Source: Lepidodermella squamata (taxonomy: Eukaryota > Animalia > Gastrotricha). Taken from it: a stretch of 64,000 nt of DNA. The stretch is from contig JBLDXI010000011.1 of the NCBI GenBank assembly GCA_047495785.1, forward strand, positions 1,550,001 to 1,614,000, in the 5' to 3' direction. Both the position numbers and the translations under genes were made by a program. Within the stretch, counting starts at the first letter, position 1. Each line of letters opens with the position of its first letter. The notes below the pieces were generated by a model. The model was given only the letters and a program-made list of their open reading frames with translations. It was not told where the DNA came from and searched no databases. Positions 549 to 39,128 of this stretch are shown one piece after another.

Positions 549-604
549 GAGTCAAATTTTCCATCTCCACATATTTCTGCCTTTCAACATTTCTTCACAG
601 AATA

Positions 605-1536
605 ATGATCATTGCTAATTTCGCCGTTTTCCTTGCCTTATTGATCAGGACCAGCGCTTGCCCAGCATCATCGACCACTGCAACAGCAACTTCAACGCCA
701 TGCCCGACTACAACAGCTGTTACCGCGGCAACCTGTCCAACTGGTACCAGCTGTGTTTCTACCGCCAACACATGCGCATCGCCGAATCAGTGTGTTAACG
801 GTGCCCAGGCTTGCACTGACCCACTAAAATCCTGCTCGGCCACTGTGAGTGATTGCACAACTGAAGTTTGCATAGTTCGAAATCTTGAATTTTGCAATGC
901 AGCCTAGCTACAACCTGTGCCAAATCGATACGTCCGGTGGTTCAGGCGTTGGTCAGACGGGGGTGAAATATTGCCTCGGCAACGCTGGAGCCTGCAACCT
1001 GTTGACTGGCGGCACGGTAGAATCTGTTGCATATATTTAGTTGGCACTGTTTATAATCAGACGTTACAACATAGACTGCTGTGGCGCCTGCCACCACTTT
1101 CTCTACGTTCGCGTTGTGCTGTGCAGCAACAGGCGCCAATGTCTTCTACGATATGGTTACTACTGCAGGATCACCTGCAACTTATGCGACGATCTGCGTC
1201 GGTTCATCGAGCGCAACCCCATACGTTATATCATCGTCTCAGCCTAGTGCTTCAGCTACAACTGGTACTTGTATTCGCTTCCCCTACACGGCTGGAACGT
1301 CAACTGATGCACTTGTCTCGAACGCTGGTTTGGTAATAGGATTTCAACCTGATTCATTTCCCATTATATTAAATTTCATTTACTTTACCTCACAGAACAA
1401 AAGAATTAATCAAGTTGCGTTTTCATCCTTTGCTGTCTGCTGCTATGCGCTTGGCGCCGGTCCAACCGCTGGAACGCCAGCAACTCCTCTTTCTGCCTAC
1501 GGACTGACCATTGAGAAATGCAGCGGTGGCAACTAG
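605..1536 (+). CDS. Secreted Cys/Thr-rich family, copy 1 (intact, 250 aa); exons 605-844, 903-1016, 1075-1332, 1396-1536
   Basis: Hydrophobic signal peptide ending SA|CP. Three phase-0 GT..AG introns (58, 58, 63 bp) give a stop-free frame ending YGLTIEKCSGGN*. Exon sizes match the paralogues. Confidence 0.9.
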
Positions 1537-2131
1537 AAAAAGCATCAATCAACGACTGGAGACTAATTGACTAATTTTAAACGCATTTTAAAGATAAATA
1601 TTAGCTGTATTGTTCCAGTGACATTGTTTATCGTTCATTCCGAACAATAGAATCCATTTTGTGCTGTTCATCATACGTTTATTATTCGTTAATTTCGAAT
1701 CATCGTTTAGATATAGTTGATAAATACTAAATACGTTTAAAGGAACACATATCCTTCGTTTTTTGTTTTTCTTTGGGCGTTACAGGGAAAGGAGTGGGTT
1801 AGCTACATAGTGTAATAAAACCTTATATCAAATTACCCATTTTTCAATCTTTTTTAACGTATCAACTCGTCAAAATGTGAACAAGTGGCGTCCAAAGCAT
1901 TCATTCACGGTCTGGCGAGAGGGAATTACTTCAATGGAGCATCTATTGCAAGCTGCTTCTTCCATGACTTCGAATGCGATTGAATTCCTGCCTTAAGATA
2001 CTGCATTCGAATCTTAGCTAAGCCGGTGAGGTTGAACCGATCGCAGCCAACGACCTATTTCACCGTATAAAAGACAGTGCACTTTTACCTTAACATTATT
2101 TCTGCTACTTGAAAATTTTCTTCGCTGGAGA

Positions 2132-3054
2132 ATGATCATCGCTACTTTCGCCGTTTTTCTTGCCTTAACGACAGCGGCCTGCGCTTGCCCAGCATCAACG
2201 ACTACGACGCCATGCCCGACTACAACAGCAGCTACCTCGTCGGCAACCTGTCCTAATGGAACCAGCTGTGTTTCTACGGCCAACGCTTGCACATCGCCGA
2301 GCCAATGCGTCATGCGTCACATCAGCCCAGGCTTGCACTGACCCGCTCGAGTCCTGCACGACTACAGTGAGTGACTGAACTTTGCATAGCTTGAAACTTG
2401 ACATCAATATTTTTTCATTGTAGCTTAGTTACAGCCAATGCCAAATTGATACACTCGGAAGTACAGATGTTGGCCAGGAGGGGTTGAAATATTGCCTCGG
2501 CAACGCTGGAGCCTGCAAACTGTTGACTGGCGGCAATGTAGAATCAGTTGCCTATAATTGCCACTGTTTTTAATTTGATGTTTCAACATATATAGGTAGC
2601 TGCGACGCCTACCAACACTTTCACTACGTTCGCGTTGTGCTGTGCGGCAACGGGCGCCAATGTCTTCTACGACATGGTTACGTTTACAGGATCGCCTGCA
2701 ACGTAATCGACGATTTGCGTCGGATCAACGAGCACAGCCCCATACCCGATATCATCGTCTCAATCTAGTGGTTCAGCTACATCTGGTAGCTGTTTACGCT
2801 TCCCACACACGGCTGCATCTGGAATCGATACTATTGTCACAAACGGTGGCATGGTACTATTAACTGATCTTTTCACACTGGATTCACCATAATTATTCCA
2901 AATTCCAACTCAGACTAGAAGAATTAATCTATTTGCGTTTTCATCCTTTGCTGTCTGCAGCTATGCGATTGGCGCCGGTGCAACAGGTAACACGCCAGTA
3001 GCTCCTTCTACTCTGTACGGGCTGACTATTGAGAAATGCAGCGTTGGCAACTAG
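2132..3054 (+). pseudogene. Secreted Cys/Thr-rich family, copy 2 (pseudogene)
   Basis: All four exons are present. A 7-bp tandem duplication ATGCGTC (2305-2318) frameshifts exon 1, TAT>TAA at 2704-2706 stops exon 3, and the exon-4 CC is changed to CS. Confidence 0.88.
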
Positions 3055-4059
3055 AAGAAGCATCGAACAACAGCTCGAGACTAATTGACTAATTATTCAT
3101 CGCACTTTGGAGATACATATTAGCTGCATTGTTTGACTGCTGACATTGTTTATTGTTTATCATGAACACCATTTGTTCTAATCGGATGACTTGCGTATCA
3201 TTTTTATTGCATTTATTAAAGAAGCGCAGATCCTTCGTTATTCTTCAGAATAAATTGATGAGCCATCAATGACCCCACTAACATATTGCTGCCAGTTTTT
3301 TAAGACATCGTTTTCGGCGTTCAAAGTTAGGCTAAGATAGTCTCATCTGACAGTCCTAAACGGCAGGGTGATTGGTCAACTGGGGAATTATAAAAAGCGA
3401 ATAGTAGCATAATGTTTCAAGTAGTAAGTTAATCTTCGACACGCGCGCTGATTGGTCAATTGAGTGTTGCTATGACTGCGAGATGAAACATTCCTGTCGT
3501 GCGATCCACTAATAAATAATTTAATATTTACGTAAATATTTACATTTTCAAAGACCTGCTCAGACCTTGTGGCCCCAAGTTTTGTGTCAAAAGAACCGCC
3601 GGGTCATGGCCTACATTTTGCCGTCAGGCATTTCGCCCTACGACGCATCGTTGACCAGACGGACGACTTTCGACAGACCCAGGAATTAGATCTAAATATC
3701 GGATCTCGCAGTCTATTTTTGGCAGTTAAAGTGTTATCTACTTCTGAAGAAAATGAAAATTTCTTGAACTTAATTAGGGCTTTAATTTACATTGTCAATT
3801 CTTCTCTCAAAGGAGTACGTCTATCTATTGGTAGAAAACATAACTAATTCAGAGAATTTAGCATCGGCATGATTATGACATAATTTGAAGGTGAAAACAA
3901 TGTTCCTCATTAGTCAGCGATTTTCTGAAGACAACAAATTAAATGTCTTTAATAAAATAAAATAATATAATATTCATATAATATTGGCTTGGCGGAATAA
4001 ACGTATTTCGTACCAGACAGCTCAAAATAGATGACCCGATTATTTTTCTTTTGCACTTT

Positions 4060-4232
4060 AAAAGAAACAGATACAGTATTTGTTACTATCACTATTATAT
4101 CGCTGCTGGGCTTCATAATCTACGCCACTGATGCTCCCTTTAGTAAAGTGGTTTTTTACATTAAAAGTAAACAAATTAAAGTAACAGAGACAGTATTTGT
4201 CACTCGCCTTATGATATCGCTGCTGTACACGT
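4060..4232 (+). repeat. ~110-115 bp tandem dimer (GTAACAGATACAGTATTTGT..ATATCGCTGCTG..GCTCCCTT) upstream of family copies; also at ~1-165, 7592-7790 and 11823-12045
   Basis: Direct sequence comparison shows two units upstream of copies 1, 3, 5 and 6, and none before copy 2. Confidence 0.75.
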
Positions 4233-4652
4233 TGTAATTAAAGCTAACAGGTTATGAGGTAATTTTCATTATTTTTACCTCAAAATAATAGCTGCTATAA
4301 GTATTATTATTATTATTACATATGAGGTAATAAAACATGATATCAGTTTAAACCAATTTTCAATCTATTTTAACGTATCAACTCGAAAAGATGACAACAA
4401 GTGGCTTCCAAAGCGAAGCATTGATTGTTGTTCGAGCGAGAGTGAATAACTTCATTGAAGCTTCTGTACCTAGCTGATCCTTCAAAGAGTTCGAATCGCC
4501 GTGTATTCATGCCTTGACATACTGCATTCAAATCGTAGCTGAGCCGGTAAGGTCGAACCGGTCGCCCTAAACAACATAAATTTTTCGTATAAAAGGAAGC
4601 ACATTTTCCTCTCTACTCTAATTCTGTGGCTTGAACATTTCTTCCAAGGAGA

Positions 4653-5580
4653 ATGATCATTGGTAGCTTCGCCGTTTTTCCGGCCATATTGACCAGGGCC
4701 AGCGCTTGCCCAGCATCATCGACCACTGCTACAGCAACTTCAACGCCATGCCCGACTACAACAGCTGTTACCTCATCGTCGGCAACCTGTCCAACTGGTA
4801 CCAGCTGTGTTTCTACATCCAATACTTGCGCATCGTCGAATCAATGTGTCACCTCGGCCCAGTCGTGCACGGACCCGCTTAAATCCTGCTCGACCACGGT
4901 GAGTGACTGTGCCTACAATTGAAGATAAAAAAATCAAATTATTCACTGCAGCCTAGCTACAACCTATGCCAAATCGATACGCTCGGTGGTTCAGGTGTTG
5001 GTCAGTTGGGGGTGAAATATTGTCTCGGCAACGCTGGAGCCTGCAACCTGTTAAATGGCGGCACGGTAGAATCAATTATAGTTCCCAGTTTGCACAGTTT
5101 TTATGATGTTACATTTACATAGGCAGCTGCGGCGCCCACCACCACTTTCACCACGTTCGCGTTGTGCTGTGCAGCAACGGGCGCCAATGTCTTCTATGAC
5201 ATGGTTACTACTATGTTTCCGCCTGTAACTTATACGACGATTTGCGTCGGATCATCTAGCTCAAACCCTTACCCCATATCATCGCCTCAACCTAGTGCCT
5301 CAGCTACAACTGGTACTTGCGTTCGCTTCCCGCACACGGCTATACTGTCAACCGCTGAACTTGTCTCGAACGCTGGTTTGGTTAGAGGATTGCAGCCTGA
5401 TATTTTGCCCGTTGTATTAACCAAAGTTTATTTTTACAGACCAGAAGAATTAATTCATTTGTGTTCACATCCTTTGCTGTCTGCTGCTATGCACTTGGTG
5501 CCGGTGCAACCGCTGGAACGCCATCAATTCTCCTTGCTGTCTACGGACTGATAGTTGAGAAATGCGTCGGAAGCAACTAG
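4653..5580 (+). CDS. Secreted Cys/Thr-rich family, copy 3 (intact, 252 aa); exons 4653-4898, 4952-5065, 5123-5380, 5440-5580
   Basis: Signal peptide, canonical splice sites, exon sizes 246/114/258/141, TATA at 4588. Confidence 0.9.
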
Positions 5581-6291
5581 AACTACGGAACTCATTGACT
5601 AAATAACTCATTGCATTATAGCTTCATTTTTATGAGTGACATATTGTTTATTGTTGGACCCATCAATTTTGTAGTTTTACCTTTTTCGACAGTAAATTTG
5701 TTTTTCGTTCTCTCACCGCATCGTCATTTTGAAAGCTACGTCAAAATCCTTTTAACCACCTAAACCTAGCGATTAGAGCTTTCGAATTCATGATCGAAAT
5801 CAACCATGGAAAAATTCGCCAAAATGAGCGAATGGCAGCAATTTATAATGTTGCAAAACGTTTTGGACACACTGTATAATATGGCCTAAAACACGAGTTA
5901 CCGACAGAGAATCGTAACTTTTCTCCGAACATAAGTCAGTGTGGGAAGAGAGTGGCGAGAGATGATCTGAAGCGCTTTTTACCAGCTATGTATGCCACCT
6001 GCAGCTATGTTTTGCGCCTACTCGCGACCCTCTCGGGTTTACGGTTATTGCGGGGTGGGTCGAGAATAGGGTCGTCACCGACGGAAAAAAAAAGTTTTCG
6101 CTGTTTTTAGCATTTTCTTGTAGCTAAATTTCTTAATCAGATATTGTTGTTAATCAGATAGCAGAATTTTTATTTACAAAACTTCGGAACAAGTCCAAGG
6201 AACAAATTCACAGAAGAAAAATGACGAATTTATTTAATATGAGACCATGGATGTTCAAAAACGGCGTCGCCGACAGAGGGGGTGAAAAAAT

Positions 6292-6395
6292 TGCTCCGCG
6301 GCGTGGGTTCAAACCCTCCTTTCGTTCTTAGCTATGCTTAGAGCTTTGGATGTGCTTCTAGAAAGTTTCTAGAAGCACATCCAAAGCCACTCGAC
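6292..6395 (-). repeat. tRNA-like (SINE head or pseudo-tRNA) sequence containing a perfect 22-bp inverted repeat (6343-6387)
   Basis: The minus strand has an A-box-like TGGTCGAGTGG and a B-box-like GGTTTGAACCC flanking GCTTTGGATGTGCTTCTAGAAA-N-TTTCTAGAAGCACATCCAAAGC. The acceptor stem does not pair. Confidence 0.4.
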
Positions 6396-6620
6396 CACTG
6401 AACGCAACATATCAGTAATAATTGAATTGAATATTTATGTATCATTTATAGCCCCACACCTGTGCCCCATCCGTGGGGCTATTCGGAATCGTGGTGCCAT
6501 TGGAATCAGGACCTTCTGAAACGTGTAAAAATGCAAAAAAATCAGGGGGTAATTTTTTTGGAACGGCGATCCGAACTGGGGTATCCGGATAACTGACGGT
6601 AATTTCGGCGTTTTTCGTAT

Positions 6621-7020
6621 GCCGTATTAGCCAGGGCCAGCGCTTGCCCAGCATCATCGACCACTGTTACAGCAACACAACAGGAATTGGTAAGACGGCG
6701 TTGAAATTTTGCCTGGGTAACGCTAGAGCCTGCAGCCAGTTAACCACCGGCACGGTAGAATCTATTGCCAATATATTGAGTTGGTATTGTTTATAATTTG
6801 ACGTTGCAATATAGTTGCGATATAGGTAATAGGGTTGCAACCTGTTTCCCATTGTATTAACCAAAATTTGCCTAATTAGACCCGAAGAATCAATTCATTT
6901 GAGTTTTCATCCTTTGCTGTCTGCTGCTATGCGATTGGCGCCGGTGCAACTGCTAACACGCCATCAAATGCTCTTGCTGTCTGCGGACTGTTAATTGAGA
7001 AATGCAGCGGTGGCAACTAG
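6621..7020 (+). pseudogene. Secreted Cys/Thr-rich family, copy 4 (deleted chimeric pseudogene)
   Basis: No promoter or ATG. An exon-1 remnant (6621-6676) is fused to mid exon 2 (6681), exon 3 is missing between intact introns 2 and 3, and exon 4 is intact to TAG 7020. Confidence 0.88.
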
Positions 7021-7149
7021 CATTGGGATCCATTGACTGATTGACTGATCGCATTAAAGATATTAGCTTTATTCTATGAGTGACGTTGTTTATTGCTTAT
7101 TACGAAAAATAAAACGCCATGTGTGCACATCGGCTGAGTTGTTCATCAT

Positions 7150-7345
7150 GGCGGAATTACTTGATATCGAATCGTTAACTCGGCCTTGAAACTTCCTGTC
7201 AGACAGATAATCTTCGAGCCAGTTGACTTCTTCCAGTTTGAACAGTGAGATGCTGATATGAACAACATTGATCGGTTTGACAAGTCCAAATCGACGCAAT
7301 CCTCCATTCCAATCCTACGAGCAAAGCAACAGCTGAAGTTCGCAA
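7150..7345 (-). mobile_element. Degraded non-LTR retrotransposon (LINE) reverse-transcriptase fragment
   Basis: Frameshifted DCVDLDLSK.(F/I)NVVH..SLFKL..NWLEDYLSDRKFQGRVNDSIS matches the LD.SKAFD.V.H..L..KL..W+..YL..R.Q.V.VN motif of non-LTR RTs. Confidence 0.7.
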
Positions 7346-8242
7346 TGTCGTATTGGCAAATTTGAATTTGAGATCGAAAATACGCGACTGCAAATCAAAA
7401 TTACCAAACCCAAAGCAGTTTAAATTTTGAGCTTCAAAAATGAAGCTCAAAATTGAATTCGAAAATTCGCTTGGGTGCAAAAGAATTCCGCCGTGAAAGG
7501 GTTAGGCAAAAATCCGTAATAAATATTTGATTAAATTATTTCGAACCAGCTAGCTCAAAATAGATGACCTGAATATTTTTTTTGCACTTTACAAGTAACA
7601 GATACAGTATTTGTTACTATCCTCATTATATCGCTGCTGTATACTTTGCCATCTACGTGGCTGCTCCCTTTGTTTTTCACATTAAAAGTGAACAAATTAA
7701 AAGTAACAGATACAGTATTTGTCGCTCTCCCTGTCATATCACTGCTGTACTTTGCTGATGATTCCTTTAGTATACAGCGGGGTTTTAGATATCAAGCCGC
7801 GAGCGATGTAATTAATGCTAGCCCGTTATGAGGTAATTTTGTTGTCATTGCCTAGAATAACGCGATATGGCGCGCTGAAATAGTTGACGTGGATGGTTGT
7901 TAATTGCTGCTAAATATAATTAGTGTAATAAAGCATGACATCAAGTTTAGCCAATATTCAATCGTATCAACTCGAAAAGATGACAAGAGGAGGCACCAAA
8001 GGTAATCATTGGTTCTTGGTTGGGCAAGAGAAAATCCCTTCATTAGAGCCCCTATAGCTTGCTGATTCTTCGAAGAGTTCGAATGCGAGTGATTTCATGC
8101 CTTGAGATACTGCATTCGAATCCTAAGGCTTAGCCGGTAAGGTCGAACCGGTCGCACTCAACAACCTAATTCACCCTATAAAAGGCAATGAATCTGCCAT
8201 CCTAAGATCATTTCTGCCACTTGAACTTTTCTTCACTCGAGA

Positions 8243-9167
8243 ATGATCTTCGCTTGCTTCGCCGTTTTCCTTGCCGTACTGACGACGGGCAGCGCTTGCC
8301 CAGCATCAACGACCCTTGCAACAGCGACTTCAACGCCATGCCCGACTACAACAGCTGTTACCGCGGCAACCTGTCCAACTGGTACTAGCTGTGTTTCTAC
8401 CGCCAACACATGCGCATCACCGAATCAGTGTGTTAACGGTGCCCAGGCTTGCACTGACCCGCTTAAATCGTGCACGACTTCAGTGAGTGATTGTAAAACT
8501 GAAAATTGCCTCGCTAGAAATCCTGAATTTTTCACTGCAGCCTATCTACAGCCTATGCCAAATCGATACGCTCGGTGGTTCAGGAATTGGTAAGACGGCG
8601 TTGAAATATTGCCTCGGCAACGCTGGAGCCTGCAGCCAGTTAACCACCGGCATGGTAGAATCTATTGCTAATATATTGGCTTGGCATTGCTCATAATTTG
8701 ACGTTGCAATATAGACAGCCTCGGCGCCAACCACCACTTTCTCTACGTTCGCGTTGTGCTGTGCGGCAACGGGCTCCAACGTCTTCTACGACATGATTAC
8801 TTTTATTGGGCCGCCTCTATCATATACGACGATTTGCGTCGGATCTTCAAGCTCAACTCCATACCCCATATCATCGTCTTCGCCCAGTGCCTCAGCTACA
8901 TCTAGTACTTGTGTTCGCTTCCCACACACGGGTTTACTATCAAGCGCTGAACTTGTCTCGAACGCTGCTCTGGTAATAGGGTTGCAACCTGTTTCCCATT
9001 GTATTAACCATAATTTGCCTAATTAGACCCGAAGAATTAATCTGTTTGAGTTTGCATCCTTCGCTGTCTGCTGCTATGCGATTGGCGCCGGTGCAACTGC
9101 TAACACGCCATCAAATGCTCTTGCTGTCTACGGACTGTTAATTGAGAAATGCAGCGGTGGCAACTAG
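8243..9167 (+). CDS. Secreted Cys/Thr-rich family, copy 5 (intact, 250 aa); exons 8243-8482, 8541-8654, 8715-8972, 9027-9167
   Basis: Signal peptide, canonical splice sites, exon sizes 240/114/258/141, TATA at 8177. Confidence 0.9.
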
Positions 9168-9319
9168 AGCTGCAGTTAGCATCGGGACTCATTTACTAAT
9201 TGACTGATCGCATTTAAGATATTACCTTCATTCTATTGCTTATTATTGACGTTGTTTATTGCTTATTACGAAAAATAAAGCGCCATGTGTGCACATTGCT
9301 GAGTTGTTCATCATGGCAC

Positions 9320-9535
9320 TTCGGAAATATTCGATATCGAATCGTTAACTCTCGGCCTTGAAACTTCCTGTCAGACAGATAATCTTCGAGCCAGTTGACT
9401 TCTTCCAGCTTGAACAGTGAGATGCTGATATGAACAACATTGAACGCTTCGACAGGTCCAAATCGACGCAATCGCCCCGTTCTATCGCAGCATTCCAATC
9501 CTACGAGCAAAGCAACAGCTGAAGTTCGCAATGTC
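9320..9535 (-). mobile_element. Second copy of the degraded LINE RT fragment, co-duplicated with the gene unit
   Basis: Near-identical to 7150-7345 and in the same position downstream of exon 4. Confidence 0.7.
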
Positions 9536-10314
9536 GTAGGCAATTCGAATTGAGATCGAAAATGTGATTACGCGACTGCAAATCAAAATTATCAAACGCA
9601 GTTTAAATTTTGAGCTTCAAAAATGAATTGCCATATCTGATATTAGGGACGGTTTATACTCGGTTTATATTGGTGGTTATCGGTACTACCGGTAGTTTTA
9701 CCTGCTATTTGATAAAACCGGTACATATGCAGCCCTGTTGGCCTTTTCACGGCGGGAAGGGCGAATTCGGAATTTCAACTGATAATTTACATAGTTTCAT
9801 CAATTTAACGAACTTTTCTATCCCATTGGCAAAATACTACTTTCGGATGTTGCCTACACGAATCTGAAACTAAAACTTTATCATCGTAAATTATCGTAAA
9901 TCAAGCTGCCATGAAGAGTCATGCGGCCAACTGGAGCCAAGGATCCAATCCTCGAGTGGGAAAGCTGCTGGTAATTCCCGCCAAGCAGTTCCTCCGAGAC
10001 TGCGGCTCCCTTCCTCCCGGTGTAGGACGCCATTCAGCGGCAATCAAGAGATATGGCTACTCGGTGCGAAAGCCTGGGGACCATGGATCGATCAACAATA
10101 ATCAGCTCATGTATAGATGGCTCCCAGGCCTCATATATGTGATGACATGTGATCCAAGTGCTAAATGTCGAAAGGCGAATTGCGCAATAAATTATGAGTA
10201 TGAGTATCGCTTCCCTTCTTTGCAATACGATCAATTTTAAAATTTCAAACCGTTGCACGTTTATCTTCTTTTTTTCAGTCGTGTGAAACGATGTTTTGGG
10301 TATTTTTCGGGTGG

Positions 10315-11465
10315 CTGAGCGAGCGTAGCAGAAAAGTGAGTTGCGCTGCAGAGTGAACGTAGCAGAAATCAAAACAGTGTAGCAACAACGCGTGTTTAGT
10401 AGCACTTAAACGTAATCCGTCGCGCATTCATCTAATCCGCTGCGTAAACGAGTGCTATGACGCGGCAGGCGGTGCGACGGTCGCAAAAATAAGGGTGAAC
10501 GTAGCAATTTGATCAAAACTGAATTTGGTAAAAAGTTGTTATATTATGGACGAAGCCGACAGAAATTTCTTATCTGGCATAGACAACACTGTAACAGATA
10601 GGAAGCAAACGATCTTTGTATAGTGACTTTATATTCGAGCTGAATTCGCAAAGATGCGACACGCGACCACTTTATGCCACCTAACGCCCGTTAAAAATTT
10701 AATTATTTAAAAAAAATCGACAGACGAAATAATCATTGTCAAATTTGTTGTGTTTTGGCGGATAAATACTAGATTTCTCGCGGTCTATCGAATGAGCCCA
10801 GCTAAATCTTGCAGGCTCTCATAATTAATTTTCTAGCATTTTTGAAAACAGCTGTCTTTGCTGGTTTACGACAACTTTGCCATTCTTCTTTGCCATTCTT
10901 TGCCATTCTTTTGAATTTTACAGGTGAGCGACTGCGTCGGATGAAAAGTCGCAACAGTATATAAATAATATTAATAGTAATCTTTTCATTTAGTCAATGT
11001 CTATACCGATAAACGGTTTTGAAGAGGGCGAAGGCTGGCGAAAAGATAGAAATCACCCACCCCCTCAGTTGAAGATCCTACTTTTTCCGAGAAATTCATA
11101 ATCATTAATTTTGTTAACAATCATGTGTTAACAAAAGTCGCAGGAGTATATAAAAATACCTAAAAATATCTACTAAAAATACCTTAGTTTTTCGAGCTCT
11201 ATCCGAAAAAAATGTTTCACGATGATCTGAAAACATGGGTTGGGTAGTCGGTCAAATTGACATGGAATTTCCCCAATTCAATTTTGCTTGAATTATTCAA
11301 ATAAATGTTTTAAATAATCTGTAATTATAACTTTTTCGACTTGCTACGTTCACTCAGATTTTTGCTACGGTACTTCAGATTTGCTACATAACACCGGGTG
11401 GTGCTACACTCGCACAGATTTTGAGCGCTCGTTGCGCTTCTCCTAATTCTGCTACACTCACTCAG
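10315..11465. mobile_element. Non-autonomous DNA transposon-like element with terminal inverted repeats and subterminal GTAGCA repeats
   Basis: The left end CTGAGCGAGCGTAGCAGAA matches the reverse complement of the right end (CTGAGTGAGTGTAGCAGAA). GTAGCA arrays lie on the left and TGCTAC arrays on the right. No ORF. It sits in a ~2-kb block absent from the paralogous unit. Confidence 0.6.
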
Positions 11466-12490: not shown

Positions 12491-13414
12491 ATGATCTTCG
12501 CTAGTTTCGCCGTTTTCCTTGCCGTACTGACGACAGGCAGCGCTTGCCCAGCATCAACGACTCTTGCAACAGCGACTTCAACGCCATGCCCGACTACAAC
12601 AGCTGTTACCGCGGCAACCTGTCCAACTGGTACCAGCTGTGTTTCTACCGCCAACACATGCACGTCGCCAAGCCAATGCGTCCCTTCGGCCCAGGCTTGC
12701 ACTGATCCGCTTAAATCCTGCTCGACTACAGTGAGTGATTGCACAACTGAAGTTTGCATAGTTCGAAATCTTGAATTTTGCAATGCAGCCTATCTACAAC
12801 CTGTGCCAAATCGATACGTCCGGTGGTTCAGGCGTTGGTCAGACGGGGGTGAAATATTGCCTCAGCAACGCTGGAGCCTGCAACCAGTTGACTGGCGGCA
12901 CGGTAGAATCAATTATAGTTCCCAATTCGCTCAATTTATTTGTTGCATATACATAGACAGCAACGGCTCCAACCACCACTTTCTCTACGTTCGCGCTGTG
13001 CTGTGCGGCAACGAACGCCAATGTCTTCTACGACATGGTTACTTTTGCAGGATCGCCTGTAATTTATTCGACGATTTGCGTCGGATCAGCGAGCACAACC
13101 CCATACCCCATATCATCGTCTTCACCCAGTGCCTCAGCTACAACTGGTTCTTGTGTTCGCTTCCCACACACGGGTGGCACGTCAGCCGATGCACTCGTCT
13201 CGAACGGTGCTTTGGTAATAGGATTGCAACATGATATGTGTCCCATTTTTTTAACCAAAATGTACTCTTACAGACCAGAAGAATTAATTCATTTGTGTTC
13301 ACATCCTTTGCTGTCTGCTGCTATGCGCTTGGTGCCGGTCCAACCGCTGCAACGCCAGCAACTCCTGTATCTGTCTACGGACTGATTGTTGAGAAATGCA
13401 GCGGTGGCAACTAG
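12491..13414 (+). CDS. Secreted Cys/Thr-rich family, copy 6 (intact, 250 aa); exons 12491-12730, 12789-12902, 12957-13214, 13274-13414
   Basis: Signal peptide, canonical splice sites, exon sizes 240/114/258/141, TATA at 12425. Confidence 0.9.
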
Positions 13415-23182: not shown

Positions 23183-23430
23183 TTTTGTACGAAGGATTTT
23201 CAGAAATAAAATTGAACAAAGTGCAATTTTTGTCGCTAGCTTTGAGATTCTATTATTTTCGCACTTCGATGGAAATCCATGGAAGTGATTTTGAAGCAGA
23301 ATCCAAAATGAAACATTTATTAATTTGTATTCAATCAGAGGCGGCGAAGATGAACGCCTTTGCCAACTTTAAATGTATCAATGGGAAAAATCGAACTCTT
23401 TTGAATACTGACGTAGCTGGTGATAGCACG

Positions 23431-24370
23431 TTAAAAAGGTCTGCCACTCGTGCAATAGTTGACTGTCAGTCCGTAGAGCGAAACACTTGAAGGATTTGAA
23501 GAAGGTCTATTTCCCCCGATGGAATAGCAGCAGGCTGCATAGCTGGCGAATGCGTTCCCTTTGGTCTTTTAAAATAATCCCGTTTAGACTTGGGAAATAC
23601 TATAGTACAAAGGCTTACATAAATGGAATTTGTGACAAGGCTATCACTCGATGCCGTAGCCGAATGCGGGAAGCGTACGCATGTAACAGTTACAGTAGTC
23701 GCACCAGGAGAAGTTGATGTTAAACGGTACGGCGCAGGGCTCGCCGTTCCGACACAAATCGTCGTATAAATACTAGGAGGCCCTTGAATAGCAGCCAGAT
23801 CATAGAAAACATTCGTCCCCGTTTGCGCACAGCAATCAGCAAACGTACTGAATGTGTTGGTGCCCACTGAAACTTGCTATATGTAACATAAAATAGAACA
23901 GCGTAAACTCTTTGATTTAAGCTCATACTGTCGCGCCGGTCAACAGGTCGCAGGCTCCGGCGTTGGCTAGACAAAATTTTGTTCCCGGCGTGCCAACATC
24001 TGACCCGCCGATAGTATCGATTTGGCACAGGTTATAAACAGGCTGCGTTAGATTGAAATTAGATATTAGATTGAAATGTTAGGCGCTGTAAGGATTTGTG
24101 GCCACTCACAGTTGTCGAGCAAGATTTCGTCGGATCACTGCAAACCTGGGTCGGTGCAATGCACACGCTAGATTGGCAAATGCTTGTTAAAGAAGCGCAG
24201 CTGGTACCAGTAGCACATGTTGGCGACGAGCTAACTGACGGGCATGGCGTTGGTGGGCAAGACGCTTTTGGGCATGGCGTTGAATTTGTTGTTAACGTCG
24301 ATATTGATGCCGGGCAAGCGTAGCCCGTAGTCAACGTGGCCAGAAAAACGGCACAGCTAAGGATGAGCAT
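23431..24370 (-). CDS. Secreted Cys/Thr-rich family, copy 7 (subfamily B); exons 24370-24110, 24042-23929, 23876-23619, 23565-23431
   Basis: Signal peptide ending YA|CP, the same three phase-0 introns with exons 2/3 of 114/258 bp, ending LYGLTVNYCTSGRPF*. The last acceptor (AAAAG) is weaker. Confidence 0.85.
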
Positions 24371-26164: not shown

Positions 26165-27126
26165 ATGTTCATCATTAGCTGTGCCGTTTTTCTGGCCACG
26201 TTAGCTACGAGCTACGCTTGCCCAGCATCAATATCGACGTTAACAACAAATTCAACGCCATGCCCAAATGCGTCTTGCCCACCAACGCCATGCCCGTCAG
26301 TTAGCTCAACGCCAACATGTGCTACTGGCGAAAGTTGTATTTCTACAGCTGAAATTTGTTCATCTCCAAACGTCTGCGCTCCTCCAACTCAGGCTTGCAC
26401 TGATTCGACTAAAAGTTGCACGACCACAGTAAGTGAGAGTGAAACGCGGAGAGTTGAATTTTGCAGTGATTATATTCTGTATTTTACACAACACAGCTTG
26501 TTTATAACCTGTGCCAAATCGATACTATCGGCGGTACAGAAGTTGGGACGCCAGGACTCAAATTTTGTCTAGCTAACGCCGGAGCCTGCACCCAGTTGAC
26601 CGGCGCAACAGTAAACACATACCTCGTCCAGTTAGTTATAATATAATCTGTTTGATTTTCCCAGCAAGTTGCAGAGGGTACCACCAAATTCGCTACATTT
26701 GCTGATTGCTGTGCGCAAACCGGGGGAAATGTCTTCTACGATACGATTGTTTTCGAGGGGTCTCAAAGTATTACAACGTTCTGTTTTGGAACAGCGAGCT
26801 CGATGCCATACAAGATAACATCGACTCAACCTAGTACAACAGCTACAACTGGCACTTGCTTACGCTTCCCGTTCTCGGCTGAAACATCAGGCGAGAGCAA
26901 GTTAAAAAATCCCAATTTTGTAAGCTGGTTTTAACCTTGATACTTAATACTTACCTAATAATTGTAATGACTTTAACAGAAGAGATTCATTGGAGGATAT
27001 GAATTCGAAAGCTTTTCTTCCTGCTGCTACGCTATTGCTGCCACAAAGCCTTCTTCACCGATCTCAACTGTTTCATTATACGGACTGAAAGTCGACAGGT
27101 GCAGAAGTGGCTTCCCAAGGGTATGA
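26165..27126 (+). CDS. Secreted Cys/Thr-rich family, copy 8 (subfamily B); exons 26165-26428, 26497-26610, 26665-26919, 26980-27126
   Basis: Signal peptide, three phase-0 introns, FATFADCC, CLRFP, FESFSSCC and LYGLKVDRC motifs. Confidence 0.88.
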
Positions 27127-27630: not shown

Positions 27631-30600
27631 TCATTGAAGCACAGATAGGACAAACATAACAATAGAAAGTAACCGCCAATCTGAAAATATCCTAAATCCA
27701 CCACAAGACGATGTAAGTTTTTTCGAGTCTTTTTTCTCTTGCTGCGTGGTAGTCCTCACTCGATTCATAGTCGATGATGATCTACTCGTTGTCGGTTCGT
27801 CATCTTCAATCAAAGCCCAGTCTTCAGTAGACTGAGTCAGAGGGGTTGTAAAAGGTGAAGCAATTTTGCCATACTCGCATAGCTCTGGAAGTTGGGAAAT
27901 CGCCTCTTCAGGCAACGCAACCCCATTCCATATCGCTAGACAAGCCAAGCAATCAACGGCATGTAACCGCCGCCCAATCGCCAGGGTGAAGTTCTTCTCA
28001 TCATAAAACTGGCTGAACGCGTTAGTAACTTTCCGCCGAGTTTTCACAATTGACGATGAAAAATTCGTGCTTTCATGTGTGTAAAACGTCGCGAGCAACG
28101 AATTTGCCTTACCAGGATCCCGTTCGAAGGTTAACGCAACTAGAACCCAGCCATTTTTCGTCGCTTTCACAGGGAAATCCCGCCTCTTCCAATTCGAGGT
28201 TTCGAATGAAATCACGCCATATGAATATTGAATTGATAGTATCGGGTTATTCGGATCGCCCTGTAAAATGCAGATAGCCTCGCCACCCGGGCTCTTTGGA
28301 TCGATGAAAAGGTAAAAGGCCATTGTCCACGAAAAAGCATCTGCTCGACCTAAGTTATACTCTATCAAACTTGTGTCCGATGCCATGCCAATCCCGAGGG
28401 AGTAGGAAGATTCGTATTGATCAAATGGCCCGTTTTCGATGGAATCCAACCTCGCGTCTCTCGATACAAAAGATGGCATCAGGCCTTTAACAGCCTCTGA
28501 AATGCCGAATTTCCGATTAAATGGCCAATAACCGATTAGCTTTGAAAAATCGTGAATTGCTGGTTCGAGGAGGTCAGGATGACGGTCGACCATCAGCGAA
28601 TCCGGGCAATGGCCTCGAGTCCTGCAGACGCAAGGAATTCTCGCGATTTCTGTCTCAGTCAGCCGTTTCCTCCAGAAAATTGAGCAGGAAATTCGATCAG
28701 AGGGTAAAATTGGCCCGAAAGAGAGCTCGAACGAATCTTGCTTCATACCATGCTCCAAGCCATCGCCAAACCTGACGATTTCGGAAATTGTGAAGTTTTT
28801 CAATTCTTCCACGATATCTCCGCTGGATCTATGCAGCGAAAGGATTTGTTTCTTTGAGCTGTAAGTAACGGCTAGGAACGTCCATTCTCGACTCATTATA
28901 TCTAAACCAGTTACATTGATTGATTTTGAAGTTTCGGGGGAGTCTAAGAACAGCGTTCCTGCGACGAATCGAACTTGAAGCTGAGAAATCTTTCGTCCAG
29001 GCAGAATTTGCCTCATCTGGAAAATCGTGCCATTAGTTTTGGTATCTCCTTTGAAGAAGTAAAAACCGATTGTAAATTCGCTCGGGATTCCGAAAGAAAA
29101 TCTGTAGGACGAAAGGCGATCTCCCCACTTTTTCAAAGGTGAGACTGAGTAAGAAGTGCCAAAAGCTCGGAATGGACCAGGCTCGTCCGCAATCAATTTT
29201 TCCGAAATTTGCCCGCCTGAATCTTCAACAGCATTCGCGATATCGTTCAGAGCGCTTATGTTATCGAAAGGCCAGAAAGCTGTAACGAAATCCAGTTTTG
29301 GCATACCGACTATCGGGGCGTCTGACTGACTACAGGACGATCCAGGGTCGACAACCGAGGTACAAGCGCATCGTAAACGGGCAGCGTCAGGCGATTTGAG
29401 GCTTTCGTTGAAAATCGAAAGGCAAGTCATGCCCATTTTCCGACGAGTTGGCCCTATGGCTAGCTCAATTGTTTGGTCGAGTTTATGAGACTCCTTGAAG
29501 ATTGGCAGGTCGATATTCGGAAATTTTCTGAGTTCGTCGCCGATTTCGTCGAAAAATCGAACCGTCCGAGTTGACGCGTCGTATGAAAGGGCGAGAAATT
29601 TCCAATTTCCAGCCGGTAAAATATTCGCAACGTTGATGATTGCGTTGAAGTTATCGCGCAACAGCATGATTAAATTGTCGCGGTCTGAAAAAGCAATACT
29701 CAGCCGGCCGAGTTTGAGCAGCGGGATCACAGTGTCGACTTTTTCAGCGAAATTCTGCAGATGGAAGAAGAAGGCTATGCTAAAGCTGGAATTTTCGTGA
29801 AGTTTGAACTTGTAAGTATCTATCACCCATTCGCCGTTATCTATTGGGCTGTTCAGCATTAGAGGCCTCTTGAAAGGACCTAAAAGCAAAAGTTCGTTAA
29901 TTAACGAAACTTTCCAGAAAATTGTAAGAAAATTATGAAAACCAGAACCTAGAAATTTGCAAAAAGCAAAAGAGTGCCCATTATTTTTCAAAACTAACCC
30001 TAACCCTAACCCTAACCTCCACCTTGAACTTTGAACCTGACACTGACCCTAACCCGAATCCCGAACCCTAACTCGAACCCAACCCTAAGCCCATACCCCA
30101 ACCCTAACATAACATTGAACCTAACCCTAAACTAAAACTGAGCCAGGAACAACCCCGAAAATTCCTAAAAAATTTTTTAAAAATTCTATACATAATACAT
30201 AATTAAATTCAAATTTTGCCGGATTTAGCCAAGTTGGAAACTGACCTGTTAGCGTGCTAGTTTTGTATCTCCTTGCTCGAAATATGTCAGAGGAAGGTCC
30301 ATTGCCTGAAGTCATTTCCGTCCCACCATATTCGTCATTCAACGGCCAAAATCCAATCAAACTCTCTGGCAACGGCCCGTTATAAGCCTGCCTCCGAAAG
30401 ACCAACCCATCCGGGCAGCGCCCACGTGTTTTGCAAACGCAGGGCAACCGCTGAACTTCAGCCGGCGATAAAACGTCCTTATAAATCGTTAAACACGACA
30501 AACGGTCCTTCTTTTCAATAGCGCCTATCGCCAGACCTTTGAGCCAACTTGGAATCGTCCGTGGTAAATGCGTTATCAACAGCGGCAAACCAGTTGCGTC

Positions 30601-31155
30601 GATAACTCGCAGTGAATTAGCCAAATGATCGTAACCAATCGAGACGAAAGTCCATTTCTTAGTCGTAAAAGCCGACCAATACGGCGTGGCGTTAACGTCA
30701 TTCGCCTTAACGTAGGGTAGGTCGAGAAATAAATTCTTGCCCATGTACCCAATAGCGAATTCATTGCCACGCCCCTCGCCAAACTTGAGTATTCTCTTGT
30801 AGTTCGAATTGTCCTTTTTAAAGCCACTGTAGAAGTAGAAACTTATTGTGAAACTAGGCGGAAAGACTGCATCTGGATAGCGGATGAGGTAGACTGAGGC
30901 ATTTGAAGTCGAATGTGAGGTCGCATTCAGGCCAAAAGGCCCTGCAGGGTCGTTGTAGATCAACTGTCCAGAGCTGGACTTTAAAGTCGTAGCGCCTAGG
31001 GCATTTCGGTCGCCAAACGCTTCCTGAACTCCCGATAGCGAATCGAAAGGCCAAAAGCCGAGGAGGCTCTGCGGCTTAGGGCCTTGGAACTCCTGAGCAT
31101 GGATTTTACTGGCCAAAATACACAATTGCAGAAATGAACCGAAAAACAGCCACAT
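27631..31155 (-). CDS. Cell-surface protein with four LamG/ConA-like (pentraxin-like) domains, S/T stalk and probable GPI signal (~1052 aa); exons 31155-30246, 29879-27631
   Basis: Signal peptide, four repeats of (G/A)(F/Y)WP(F/L)..FT(I)xF(Y/F)..W.F+A+.Y..IG..C+.I+...L...E+..L, a phase-1 intron joining the two ORFs in frame, and a hydrophobic C-terminus with no cytoplasmic tail. Confidence 0.8.
29994..30130 (+). repeat. Interstitial telomere-type (CCCTAA)n/(TTAGGG)n array, degenerate, intronic
   Basis: CTAACCCTAACCCTAACCCTAACC followed by ~110 bp of decayed hexamers. Confidence 0.8.
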
Positions 31156-32351: not shown

Positions 32352-35300
32352 TTATTCAAATACCGACTTGAAAATAACAATAATAGCAAACGCATAGCCT
32401 AACGTTAACCGGCCGCTATGTGAGGCCAGTGGCACAATTTTGCCGATCATCGTAGTTCTAGAGCTAGCGTTGTGTTTACTCGGAATTTGCGGCCCGATAA
32501 CTGCTAAAGAATTCGGCTGGTAAACATTCGGTATGTTACAAAGACCATTTCTCCGGCAAACAAATGCTAGCCTCGTGAAGTCTTCCGCTGCCAGAATATC
32601 GGCGTAGATTGACAGACAGACAACACTATTTTGGCTCTGGCCACTTGACGTCGGCCCAATTCTGACGTAGTCCAAGGCTCCGGACGTCCATAAACGAGGG
32701 ACGCTATGCATTGAGATGTTTCGCCCAGTTTCGTCGTAAAACTTCATGACGGACTTCTCGTAACTTATTCCGACAAAGTTCCACTCAGTTTTTGGCGATA
32801 GGACTTTAGTTTTAGCGATTACGACCCTAGTTCCGCCTGATCTTGTCCCAATCACTACAATCCAGTCACCCTGAAACGCAATGGTGAGCATGAGAGGCGG
32901 GCCGAGAAATACCAGCCCGAATCTATCAGCTGTCGAGCCGAATTCTGACTGTTTTGAGAAAAGGTAGAACGCCACGGTGAATTGGTCTCCGACTGACTCG
33001 TATTGAACTTGAATGCCGTCGAGGCTTTGGCGGAAGCGTGGGTAGCAAACTATGAACGAATCATCGCCTATTATCGACATGACCGGCTGGCTTTCATTTC
33101 CGATTTTGAACGGACCGGCTTCGATGATTTTGATCTTCCGGGGCAGGCGAAATTCGACTACTTCACAGTCATTTCCGATATGGCCAGGTTTTACAGGCCA
33201 AAAGCCGATTAAAGCACCTAAAAACAAGTGTAATAGACTCAAGGGAGAAATGAATGCAAAGATATTACCTGGTTTTGGACCCATGTAATCCGGGTTTGTG
33301 ATGAGACTCTTCGGCCTAGCAGCGAATTGGCAGGCCCTTCTCATTTTCGAAATTTCCTGACCATCCAGACTTGCATTGAACATAGCTAGGCAAATCAAGG
33401 TACTGCCCTCAGGCCACGCCGGGCCTATTGATAGATCGATAGGCGATTCAACACTAACATCCAAAGGTCGTTGCTCGTAAACCAAACCGCCACTTTCGTT
33501 GTAAAGCCTCGCGGTTTTTGTTGGCCTGTCGTAGGTTAATGCGACGAAATTCCAGCCGTTATCGCTAGGAGTCAAAGTCAGAGCTTCCGAGCGGAGAATC
33601 ATCCGTTCAGTGCCTATAGCTGTGCCAGTATGAATCTCTAGGAAGTCACCCTCAGCTTTCAAAATCAGCTTATTCCAAGTGTGGATGAGTACAGAGCTAA
33701 TACTGCGATCAGCAGGCCGGTATAAATAGAAGGTTATCGTGAAACTTTTCGTTAGTCGAACCCCTGAGTAACTCGCTAGCCATTTTTGAAGCTCAGGATT
33801 GAAAGTTGCTGAATGAAGCCGTCGTGGCACCCCAGCGAAGGGAGGCCCTGATAGTAAAGACTGCCTAGGTAGGTGAAGTTGAACAGCGTCCACCTCAAAA
33901 GGCGCTAATCCGTCGATTGCTTCATTTAACCCACCCCCGACATCAGCCTCGTCCGAGGGTTGGTCAAACAACGGCCAGTAACCGATGAGATTTTCATGTT
34001 TAGGACCCCGGTAGATGAAATCCGTTGGTTTGTAAGGCGATCCGTCCGGGCAGTTGCCTCGTGTCTTGCAGACACATGGCAATCTCGCGATTTCAGCCTG
34101 TTGTAACGCGCTTTTGAATAAAGTAAAGCAGGCCAATCTATCACCGGGATTCAGCGTTCCTATAATAAGATTCTTCACAATCGGCATGCCCCAATCCCCG
34201 AAATTTTGAGTCGCTAGTATCGCCCCGGAGCTTGAGAAAAACTTCATGATTCTCTCGTTCGAGTCGAAAGTCAACGCGAAGAAATTCCATCGATTTGACG
34301 AGAAGTCCAAAGTTGGTCCTTTAATCGCGCTTTCGTTTTTGTTCCGGAATCTCACAACAGTGGAATAGGCAAAATTGTTCGAATAGCGGAGGGAAAATTC
34401 CGGCGAGAGTGACGCCCCGCTTCCGAAATGAAAGATGTTTGGGGTCGTCGCTAAAGCGGGTTGATAGGCGTATTGAGGTTCTTTTTCGTTCTTCTCAGGG
34501 CTTGAGTGGTACAGGTAGAAAGAAATGGTGAAATCTGGCGGTAGTTCGATGTTGTCGTAGGAAACTAGAGGCGTCACTGGGGAGGTTGTGACTAGACCGT
34601 AAGACAGCTGACCGGGGAACGGGCCTGGAATGCATGTGGTGACGTAGTACCAATCGGCGTAGAAGCTCGGCGAGTAGCGATAGCCGAACTCGTCTAGCTT
34701 TGTGTCATTATCGAACGGCCAAAAGCCGACGAGGTGCTCACCGGATGGGCCGTTGTACTCGGCGAAGACGGCGCCGCACTTGGACGGAAATACTGCGTAA
34801 AAATACATGGAAAAATATTAAGAAGCCGGTGAAAGCTGAAAACTGAGAATTTCGGGAATAATCATATTTTCGGAAATAGAGAAACTTCTTTACTATAATT
34901 TAGCCTTCCCCAGCAGTTTAGCTTAAAATATGATCAAATCATGATCAAATATGATCAAACAATGATCAAATTTGATCCATAAATCATGATCGAACTTGAT
35001 CATTGGGAACTGGGACTTTCTTGATCAAATTTGAACTAACTTTGAGCGACCAATTTGTTGAAACTGTGCAGCAGAACCATGCAGTAAATGTTATGATGAT
35101 TCATTCTATTCTAGGTGAATCAGTCCAACTATAGGCGAAATGTTTTAACTCAATTTGTTAGATACATAATCATGCGGTTTGCACTAAAAAACTTCTCCCC
35201 AGGGTAACCGGTATTTCTAACAGATTAGCACCGGTAGATTGAAATTCTATGGCTATCCCAGTGAGATGCTCTAATGATCGATTAAACTAAGGTGATGTCA

Positions 35301-37121: not shown

Positions 37122-37865
37122 ATGAGAAGATTAATCGTAACTGGTAGCATTATTCTGGAGATTTTCGCCTGTATCGCGATAGCTTGCCCGTCTTCTACAA
37201 CCTTCACAGTGACCCCCACGCCAATTCGAACATGCCCATCGGGTCAGAATTGCCTTAATGCAACATGTCCAACTGGGCAATCATGCCTCGATGCAGTAAG
37301 TATTAATAGACATTAATTTGTGTAGAAACTGAATGAGACTCTCGACAGAAATCATTCGATTACTGTCAAGTGCAAACGAATGGAACAGGAACAGCCTCGA
37401 AGGCCATTAACTTTTGCCCGATGTCCGGGCGCTGTGTTTCTCCAGCTTCTGTAAGTCGATTCTATACCCGGTTTGTTCCGGTCTAATCAAGATTTTAAGG
37501 GGACTGGTCTACAATTTGGATCATTCGAACAATGTTGCGCATACGGAGGTTTTACGGCTTACGATACCACCTTCCGCCAGTATCCGCCATATTGCTACCT
37601 AAGCACGCTGAGATACAACGTTTGCGTCGATTCTAGCACTCGGCGATACTGCGTCCGCTTCCCCGAATCTTGTCTTGGCACGGATGCGCTAGCCGTAAGT
37701 TTTGAAAGCTTTCAAATTTCATCGGGTGAGAATTTCTCTCCTTCATAGGCTGGCTCGAGTCAATTTGCATCTTTCGGCGAGTGTTGCAGAGGTATAGCCG
37801 CAACTTTCACCCAGTCCGAAACTTCAACTCTATACGGACTGAAAATTGAGCGATGTTCGCAATAA
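37122..37865 (+). CDS. Secreted Cys-rich family, copy 9 (divergent short form, ~195 aa); exons 37122-37295, 37349-37450, 37500-37694, 37749-37865
   Basis: IA|CPSSTT start, the same three phase-0 introns, FGSFEQCC, CVRFP, FASFGECC and LYGLKIERC motifs. Confidence 0.85.
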
Positions 37866-37978
37866 CTGAACTAAATAATTTCGCCCGAACTCTAGAAGAA
37901 CCGTGTTGGTGCAATGAGAGAGGAAAAATACAATTGTCTAAGTTAGTCACGAATAGTCGACATTTTTTCCCGGTTTAG

Positions 37979-39128
37979 ATGCTTAAAAAATTGAAAATGC
38001 ATGGATTCGCTTTTTTGGCCGCTTTCCTTACTGGTACAATGTTCGGAATCGTGATTTGCTGCCCTGCTTCATCAACAATCACCCAGCTGCAGTATGTTCC
38101 ATTGTCTTGCCCAAGCAGCACTACATGCCTTAATACAACGTGCCCTAGTGGACAAACTTGCGCAACTTTGGTGAGTTGAGTTTCTCTGGCTGGAATGATT
38201 CGAAGCTAAAACCCTAATTCTAAGATAAAATCTATTAAATACTGGAGTTTATCTATTATTTTACCATTTTTAGAGCAAAGCTGTCATGTGCCAACTGTCA
38301 ACAAACGGTGGGGCGAATGTTGCTACGCCAATTACGGTTTGCGTCCAGGGCACAACCTGCCCCTTCACAACTTCCGTGATCGTCAATACCTACATATCGT
38401 TCGCGCAGTGTTGCTCCGACGTCGCTTCAATGGGCGACCAAAGCGCCTTAGTAGCTTATGATTCTGTGAACAACACAGCGTTCCCATTCTGTTTCGGTGG
38501 AAGTTTCAAATATGTGCGATGCAACGCCTCGCCTAATTACTGCCTCCGCTTTCCGAGCAGCTGTGCGGCCGGAGAAACGGATTTGGTAAAAAAAATGAGA
38601 AAATCCTAATTATAATAATTAAATTTTGGCATTTCCTTGAAATTTACAAATCAATTCTAAATTTTCAATTATCTTCAAATTAAATTTGAATTAAATTAAA
38701 TCCTCTCGAAAAGCTACTCCTGGGCAATTTTCTAGTGTTTTCTTCTATTCAGCAGAATATCGGTTCCGATTTCTTGATCCCTCTTAAAACTTTAATTTTT
38801 GCTCAAGTAGCATTTTTGGGACATTCATCACTAAAAGTCAGGATTCCAAAGGCTTCAGTCTACATTTCAGGACTACCCCATTTCTGATCTTTTGGTGATT
38901 TTCCTACTTTCCATGAAAATTTCGTACGAATTTTCCTGCTTAAAGCATAGTTTAGAAGTCCTTGAAATCGCCGAGCATATCATGCCGCTTACATTGTTTT
39001 TGTTTCTCTTTCAGAGTTCCGGATCATTACGATCGTTCGCAGCGTGTTGCGCGAACCTCGGCGCTACCATCAATTCATTTTCGACCGTTTCCCTGTATGG
39101 CCTAACAATCGATAGATGCTCGCTTTGA
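37979..39128 (+). CDS. Secreted Cys-rich family, copy 10 (divergent, lacks intron 2); exons 37979(or 37997)-38170, 38274-38585, 39015-39128
   Basis: C|CPASST start, SFAQCC, CLRFP, SFAACC and LYGLTIDRC motifs, phase-0 introns at homologous positions 1 and 3. Confidence 0.82.

Follow-up and report, generated by a model that had tools for sequence, protein, structure and literature searches.

A large lineage-restricted family of small secreted cysteine-rich proteins in the gastrotrich Lepidodermella squamata, tentatively assigned to an extracellular coat or matrix

What are the small cysteine-rich proteins encoded by ten clustered loci in the genome of the gastrotrich Lepidodermella squamata, and what might they do? 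The cluster occupies positions 605-39128 of a stretch of 64,000 nucleotides (nt), positions 1,550,001 to 1,614,000 on the forward strand of contig JBLDXI010000011.1 (assembly GCA_047495785.1), which we refer to as the window and in which all coordinates below are counted from its first letter. An initial annotation, made from the sequence alone, had described a ten-member family of secreted proteins with an unrecognised domain and had proposed a secreted effector, such as a defence protein or toxin, a pheromone, an adhesive, or a cuticle or egg-coat protein. Here, we report that the window loci are real genes for small secreted proteins, that these proteins belong to a lineage-restricted family present in no library or paper searched, and that abundant extracellular coat or matrix glycoproteins are the role we tentatively favour, at somewhat less than an even chance.

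Searched by tblastn with the peptides of all four exons of g1, the first gene, the window yielded ten loci (g1 to g10, E-values from 1e-52 to 1e-5), all within 605-39128, and nothing comparable elsewhere. Six-frame reading combined with enumeration of frame-keeping GT..AG pairs gave one consistent homologous model per gene, the usual plan being four exons separated by GT..AG phase-0 introns of 49-68 base pairs (bp), with g10 as the exception. Eight genes (g1, g3 and g5 to g10) are intact and encode proteins of 194-259 amino acids (aa), and two (g2 and g4) are dead. Exon-3 identity to g1 falls into tiers of 72-81 % for g3, g5 and g6, 53-54 % for g7 and g8, and 28-37 % for g9 and g10, in agreement with the three subfamilies (A, B and C) proposed earlier, which are real. 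The number and state of the loci and their homologous phase-0 introns likewise turned out as first described, g10 departing in an exon fusion and in intron length. "Ten-member" is correct for the window and wrong for the family, which has a further copy (L037) 2.2 kb upstream of the window and hundreds in the genome.

The proteins consist of two modules behind a signal peptide. In every copy, the signal peptide comprises about 17-27 hydrophobic residues with small residues at its end, and in 24 of 24 copies examined it closes with '...A' and is followed directly by Cys-Pro, as the initial annotation had it. There follow a Thr/Ser/Pro/Ala-rich segment of about 20-40 residues and a ladder with one Cys per 6-7 residues. 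The C-terminal head, about 165 residues with 10-12 Cys, derives from exons 2-4 and is beta-rich and almost uncharged. Exon 2 supplies three invariant Cys; exon 3 supplies the scaffold F-x2-F-x2-CC ... Y ... C ... C-x-R-F-P, in which F12, C15, C16, C41, C66 and P70 are invariant and Y25, Y50, R68 and F69 at least 90 % conserved (41 sequences); and exon 4 supplies F-x2-CC ... Y-G ... C, where the CC, the G and the last C are invariant. The scaffold quoted originally is thus conserved in its exon-3 and exon-4 motifs, and the exon alignments confirm fixed Cys and variable loops, while the exon-2 motif written as 'C..C' is actually C-x6-C. A 15-column repeat, F-x-x-F-x-x-C-C (hhalign probability 90 %, E 1.7e-6), opens both exon 3 and exon 4; exon 2, considered as a third copy, has no detectable relation to either start. 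This short internal repeat, the two-module build and the scale of roughly 300 loci had all been overlooked.

The chain stops 1-5 residues past the last Cys in the C-termini examined (n = 44), with one exception at 14 residues, and none of the 44 carries a transmembrane helix or a glycosylphosphatidylinositol (GPI) signal. As the chain ends right after the last Cys, the protein is released rather than anchored, and the earlier claim of secretion stands, with a signal peptide in every copy and an anchor in none. The mature proteins are 46-62 % Thr, Ser, Ala, Gly and Pro combined and about 5-13 % charged, with 17-20 Cys and 0-3 N-glycosylation sequons. Cys as the first mature residue is also found in N-lipidated secreted proteins (Hedgehog/Spitz-type N-palmitoylation, with the bacterial lipobox as an analogy); given that the total number of Cys is even (18-20) in most members, this residue may simply be disulfide-bonded. 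As a working definition, we take the family to comprise proteins with a signal peptide, the Cys-Pro start, the Cys ladder, the exon-2 pattern C...C-x6-C, the exon-3 and exon-4 scaffolds and the chain end described above. It describes the eight intact window genes, 38 loci fetched from the genome, and P0001, a 227-aa protein from a public sequencing run.

That these loci are genes follows from several observations: the consistent GT..AG phase-0 models, ratios of nonsynonymous to synonymous substitution rates (dN/dS) below 1, a TATA box, one skipped intron and the contig that encodes P0001. The TATA box lies at about -65, together with a conserved upstream block, in the subfamily A copies including the pseudogene g2. 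The skipped intron comes from run X1, whose status as RNA is a guess, where one contig omits 63 nt bounded by GT..AG at 1333-1395, that is, g1 intron 3. This is weak support for that intron, at low depth. The P0001 contig is the stronger support for the reality of the genes.

In the 121-Mb assembly, candidate loci number 261 when exon 3 is the query, 277 with a natural exon-3+4 piece and 324 with P0001, all of these being first-look counts from searches in which 150 matches each were scored. The exon plan is shared by 38 of the 38 fetched loci, and intron losses have joined exons in several places: exons 1 and 2 are fused in L004 and L005, exons 3 and 4 in L012, and exons 2 and 3 in L003, L008, L011, L014, L020 and g10. 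In L002 and L013, a single frame likewise spans exons 2 and 3 but includes 14 and 25 additional residues at their boundary, which may be intron read-through. A member with exons 2-4 all in one exon was not found among the fetched loci. Outside the window, its contig carries tandem arrays built from 2,514-bp units (99.9 % identical) and from 3,383-bp units (99.7 % identical), and at the other extreme paralogues diverge to about 25-30 % identity. In L033 (G000:C54:1733400-1736200, 167-1048, + strand), the ladder has grown to about 20 copies of a ~13-residue unit, 'N-P-C-P-x-G-Q-S-C'. As to lineage markers, the genome lacks the nematode spliced leader SL1 and cellulose synthase, and searching it for a leader of the Oikopleura type gave no credible match.

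Birth and death of genes, as proposed earlier, is evident from the two pseudogenes, the 99.9 % identical arrays and the several intron losses. Synonymous divergence (dS) between copies ranges from 0.2 to 1.0 and varies within genes; between g1 and g6 it is 0 in exon 2 and 0.33-0.36 in exons 1 and 3. The proposed comparison of paralogues gave whole-gene pairwise dN/dS of 0.40-0.61, with no pair above 1 and with exon-4 values near 1 between recent paralogues. The whole-gene values show relaxed purifying selection, whereas an effector engaged in an arms race would be expected to be under pervasive positive selection. With its arrays, old paralogues, pseudogenes and repeated intron loss, the family is a compact example of birth-and-death and concerted evolution.

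Does the family have relatives among known proteins? Against Pfam, the ten exon translations gave only noise at E <= 1, at least 9 bits below the cut-offs, and full-length P0001 and the long pieces L002, L012, L033 and L035 gave no relevant match at E <= 10. A word-indexed search of 5.8 billion proteins returned nothing for window 1081-1536 and only P0001 itself for P0001; a profile search of PDB sequences returned nothing, and a feature search of the ESM Atlas gave no usable match. Nothing relevant was found in the literature on rotifer cysteine-rich families and run SRR30674226. For the large protein search, we used the exon-3 profile alone, and among 1.84 billion protein representatives it identified a single true relative, P0001 (E 3.6e-13), and no confident full-length match to a characterised family. 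The domain thus remains as unrecognised by Pfam, PDB sequence or fold as it was at first sight.

P0001 is encoded by a 929-nt Logan contig from run SRR30674226, which, with a 45-nt leader, an uninterrupted open reading frame (ORF) and AATAAA near its end, looks like an mRNA. The protein aligns unbroken through the parts homologous to exons 2, 3 and 4, and by eye its N-terminal part has the Cys-Pro start and the Cys ladder. The contig has no DNA match in the L. squamata genome, and the identity of the protein to its closest copies in that genome is only 35-49 %. P0001 therefore derives from another organism. Two further matches of the profile, P0002 and P0003, were rejected as a motif-level coincidence, as they match only profile positions 1-28. 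They are long charged proteins from public metagenomes, lack a signal peptide and carry a tandem repeat like F-x-F-R-x-K-x-Y-x-S-F-x-x-C-C-x-x-Y-G-L; they probably represent DNA-binding modules in proteins of phages or bacteria.

Structure prediction and fold searches, as the initial annotation had suggested, also led to no known fold. The head was modelled with AlphaFold from P0001 residues 52-227 and 65 exon-wise family rows. A composite exon alignment made with MAFFT placed exon-4 pieces on the exon-3 start, owing to the internal repeat, and the exon-4 pieces were left out of the alignment. The mean predicted local distance difference test (pLDDT) value of the model is 73 and its predicted template-modelling (TM) score 0.66; averaged in blocks of ten, the first 90 residues have pLDDT values of 77-96. 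Foldseek gave no match in the PDB (best E 0.9) and nothing in BFVD; VIA-align against 48,161 representative chains peaked at Z 2.5, compared with the 7-8 typical of models without a match; and a shape search of the Atlas gave TM scores of at most 0.34. The head may thus be either a new fold or a known fold modelled too imperfectly to be recognised. The ladder module was predicted at pLDDT 49.5 with no defined fold, and the idea that it forms a folded solenoid finds no support in that model.

What, then, could such proteins be for? The role that we consider best, with nearly even confidence, is that of abundant extracellular coat or matrix glycoproteins. They would be non-enzymatic, made in bulk from amplified gene arrays, and would build or coat an external layer, whether a surface glycocalyx or mucus, an egg envelope or a gland secretion. 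Interaction or self-assembly would fall to the disulfide-locked head, and the ladder, probably O-glycosylated and disulfide-stapled, would act as a glycosylated spacer. We favour a bulk structural role because of the 261-324 loci, the near-identical arrays, the uncharged Thr/Ser/Ala/Gly/Pro-rich composition and the lack of a match to any catalytic family or fold; the arrays, near-identical and high in copy number, and the uncharged Thr/Ser/Ala/Gly-rich composition are more in keeping with a bulk coat or matrix than with an arms-race effector. The architecture resembles mucin-type 'stalk plus head' surface proteins in its Thr/Ser/Pro-rich linker, globular Cys-rich module, passage through the secretory pathway and tandem arrays. 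In contrast to these, the linker here is N-terminal and, at about 20-40 residues, too short for a classical mucin domain, the head is C-terminal and matches no lectin fold, and the family has no SEA module, transmembrane helix or GPI signal.

Several points weigh against a coat or matrix role. Divergence to 25-30 % identity with dN/dS near 0.5 also fits a recognition or defence family, and the near-identical arrays might simply be duplications of very recent date, with no bearing on dosage. O-glycosylation and disulfide pairing are inferred only. The sole evidence for expression of a window gene is the X1 contig, with a depth of 4.3 and 21 nt on the shorter side of the junction, and transcript-derived proteins of L. 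squamata were not found in the protein collections. The head model is weak over the exon-4 part (pLDDT 40-66), where the alignment is shallow, and the missing fold match could partly reflect model error.

The main rival, to which we assign roughly a one-in-four chance, is a diversified extracellular binding or defence family, in which the scaffold would present variable loops to microbes, parasites or prey and the repertoire would be renewed by birth and death. Fixed Cys and a few fixed aromatic residues amid varying loops, hundreds of paralogues down to about 25 % identity, pseudogenes making up two of the ten window copies, and exchange patches visible between copies are all what such a family would display, and the dN/dS values, near 1 in exon 4 of recent paralogues, are high for structural proteins. 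Yet whole-gene dN/dS exceeds 1 in no pair, arrays that are 99.9 % identical give dosage and not diversity, the near-uncharged Thr/Ser/Ala-rich makeup is unlike that of most antimicrobial or pore-forming effectors, and the fold searches found no similarity to a toxin, lectin or immune fold.

It is unlikely, although the Cys patterns are suggestive, that the proteins form an interface-active or stress-protective coat, which would work by analogy with hydrophobins or insect antifreeze proteins, shielding eggs or body from freezing or drying through self-assembly at surfaces or through binding to ice or dry surfaces. The last eight Cys of the head are ordered C-CC-C-C-CC-C, as in fungal hydrophobins (PF01185, PF06766), which are likewise small, secreted, low in charge and multigene. 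The ladder, with Cys every 6-7 residues in a Thr-rich, Thr/Ser/Ala-rich and near-uncharged context, recalls the Thr/Cys-rich beta-helix of beetle (Tenebrio-type) antifreeze proteins (PF02420), as does L033 with its ~13-residue two-Cys unit repeated about 20 times; the extremely low charge and the high-copy gene arrays would also suit a protective coat. Against this, neither the Pfam hydrophobin models nor that for insect antifreeze proteins matched at E <= 10, the fold searches returned neither family, and the ladder is predicted to lack a fixed fold.

The two resemblances also weaken in detail. Compared with a hydrophobin of about 100 aa and 8 Cys, the head has about 165 aa and 10-12 Cys, including two more Cys upstream of the shared pattern; its Cys spacings of about 20-40 residues are two to five times longer, outside the hydrophobin ranges; and the proteins, from an animal, have the extra N-terminal ladder module. 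Membership of the hydrophobins was rejected, as there is no Pfam match and no hydrophobin among the Foldseek or VIA matches (best Z 2.5), and the resemblance is one of pattern only. Unlike the beetle proteins, the family has its ladder as only a short prefix to a larger head; membership of the insect beta-helical antifreeze proteins was rejected for want of a Pfam match, a solenoid (pLDDT 49.5) and TxT arrays. What would be left of either relation is functional analogy, to which we give a low probability. A similarly low one attaches to the boldest version, in which the head would be a genuinely new disulfide-locked fold and the family an animal hydrophobin- or antifreeze-like self-assembling 'surface armour' on the body or eggs, perhaps tethered through its N-terminal Cys and aiding survival of drying or freezing.

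Slightly less probable again are fast-diversifying secreted signals, that is, pheromones or cues by which mates, kin or species are recognised. Such a role would suit proteins that are small, secreted, fast-evolving and glycoprotein-like and belong to a lineage-restricted family, but about 300 genes and arrays of identical copies far exceed known recognition systems, and neither processing sites nor a link to a receptor was found. Least probable by far, and disfavoured, is that the loci are non-functional, being either an artefact of assembly or what erosion has left of the coding part of a repeat or mobile element, as the high copy number, the near-identical tandem units and the sparse expression evidence might suggest, since intact ORFs, splice sites, phases and promoters are kept across copies at dS 0.2-1.0, dN/dS is below 1, a full-length spliced mRNA-like contig exists in another organism, and the units come without an accompanying transposase or terminal repeats.

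If the coat or matrix interpretation and the family assignment are right, roughly 300 genes of a 121-Mb animal genome encode a domain new to Pfam, the PDB and the ESM Atlas, and the family would likely be among the largest in this genome. It would then offer a candidate for a new fold, a marker gene family for an animal lineage that has been poorly sampled, and a candidate gene set for bulk secretion, be it into a surface coat, egg envelope, adhesive or protective layer. Other invertebrates have expanded secreted Cys-rich families with a signal peptide, a fixed Cys scaffold, variable loops, tandem birth and death and a narrow lineage. The present family could be linked to none of them by sequence, profile or fold, and with about 300 loci and 99.9 % identical arrays it is at the upper end of their scale. 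As lineage-specific expansions of secreted Cys-rich orphans are common in invertebrates, the finding is noteworthy and not startling.

The individual gene models are as follows, introns being phase 0 throughout in all four-exon genes. Subfamily A lies on the + strand. Its first member, g1 (605..1536, 250 aa), has exons 605-844, 903-1016, 1075-1332 and 1396-1536, introns of 58, 58 and 63 bp, and a TATA box at -64. The pseudogene g2 (2132..3054, located by tblastn and six-frame reading) carries an exon-1 frameshift near 2311, an in-frame TAA in exon 3 (about 2704) and a change of the exon-4 CC to CS; its TATA box is retained despite this state. The intact g3 (4653..5580, 252 aa) has exons 4653-4898, 4952-5065, 5123-5380 and 5440-5580, with introns of 53, 57 and 59 bp. 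A remnant related to g5, g4 (about 6612..7020, +, found by the same means as g2), has lost exon 3 and retains exons 1 and 2 in fragments, together with a complete exon 4 in which the YGL motif has become CGL. The last two, of 250 aa each, are g5 (8243..9167; exons 8243-8482, 8541-8654, 8715-8972 and 9027-9167; introns of 58, 60 and 54 bp) and g6 (12491..13414; exons 12491-12730, 12789-12902, 12957-13214 and 13274-13414; introns of 58, 54 and 59 bp).

Subfamily B comprises two genes in opposite orientation. On the - strand, g7 (23431..24370, 255 aa) has exons 24370-24110, 24042-23929, 23876-23619 and 23565-23431 and introns of 67, 52 and 53 bp; on the + strand, g8 (26165..27126, 259 aa) has exons 26165-26428, 26497-26610, 26665-26919 and 26980-27126 and introns of 68, 54 and 60 bp. 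Subfamily C, on the + strand, begins with g9 (37122..37862, 194 aa; exons 37122-37295, 37349-37450, 37500-37694 and 37749-37862; introns of 53, 49 and 54 bp). The mature g9 protein has 17 Cys, an odd number, versus 18-20 in the others, so that either one Cys is free or in an intermolecular bond, or the exon boundaries are slightly off. Its neighbour g10 (37979..39128, 205 aa) has three exons, 37979-38170, 38274-38585 (exons 2 and 3 fused) and 39015-39128, a first intron of 103 bp and a last intron of about 429 bp, the acceptor of which was assigned by taking the candidate nearest the exon-4 homology.

The upstream block of subfamily A is a ~20-nt sequence, GGT(G/A)AGGT(C/T)GAACC(G/A)(G/A)TCGC, situated about 30-35 nt upstream of the TATA box; it was seen within window 500-604 and at homologous positions upstream of g2, g3, g5 and g6. 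Subfamily B has a conserved upstream block of its own, GCATGCGTACGTCGCC. Both blocks are candidate shared regulatory sites.

Other features are interspersed with the cluster or lie downstream of it. Positions 3284-3805, between g2 and g3, hold a high-copy repeat, probably a mobile element or satellite; in the DNA run X2, contig depth climbs there from about 50-150 to 2,000-13,000, and loose ends and internal joints are numerous. The gap between subfamilies A and B is occupied by three paralogous single-exon F-box genes on the + strand (15240-16223, 20392-21306 and 22274-23182; Pfam F-box / F-box-like), which encode proteins of 302-327 aa with acidic C-terminal tails. A 443-aa multi-pass membrane protein without a Pfam match at E <= 0.01 is encoded at 17753-19084 (+). 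Three large ORFs on the - strand (27631-29991, 30127-31155 and 32352-34808; 342-818 aa) contain repeated concanavalin-A-like/LamG_3 modules, to which the Pfam matches are weak, with an 'FWPF' motif and 'C-x-C-K/R-T-R-G-x-C-P-D' linkers; those of 786 and 818 aa end in a hydrophobic tail, and the three look like another lineage-specific surface family. Downstream of the cluster, reading of the ORF translations by eye pointed to a single-ORF subunit of a Cys-loop ligand-gated channel (40525-41751, -) and a 785-aa ankyrin-repeat protein (42277-44634, -), and the GC-rich (51 %) stretch that follows at 46300-47150 appears, likewise by eye, collagen-like.

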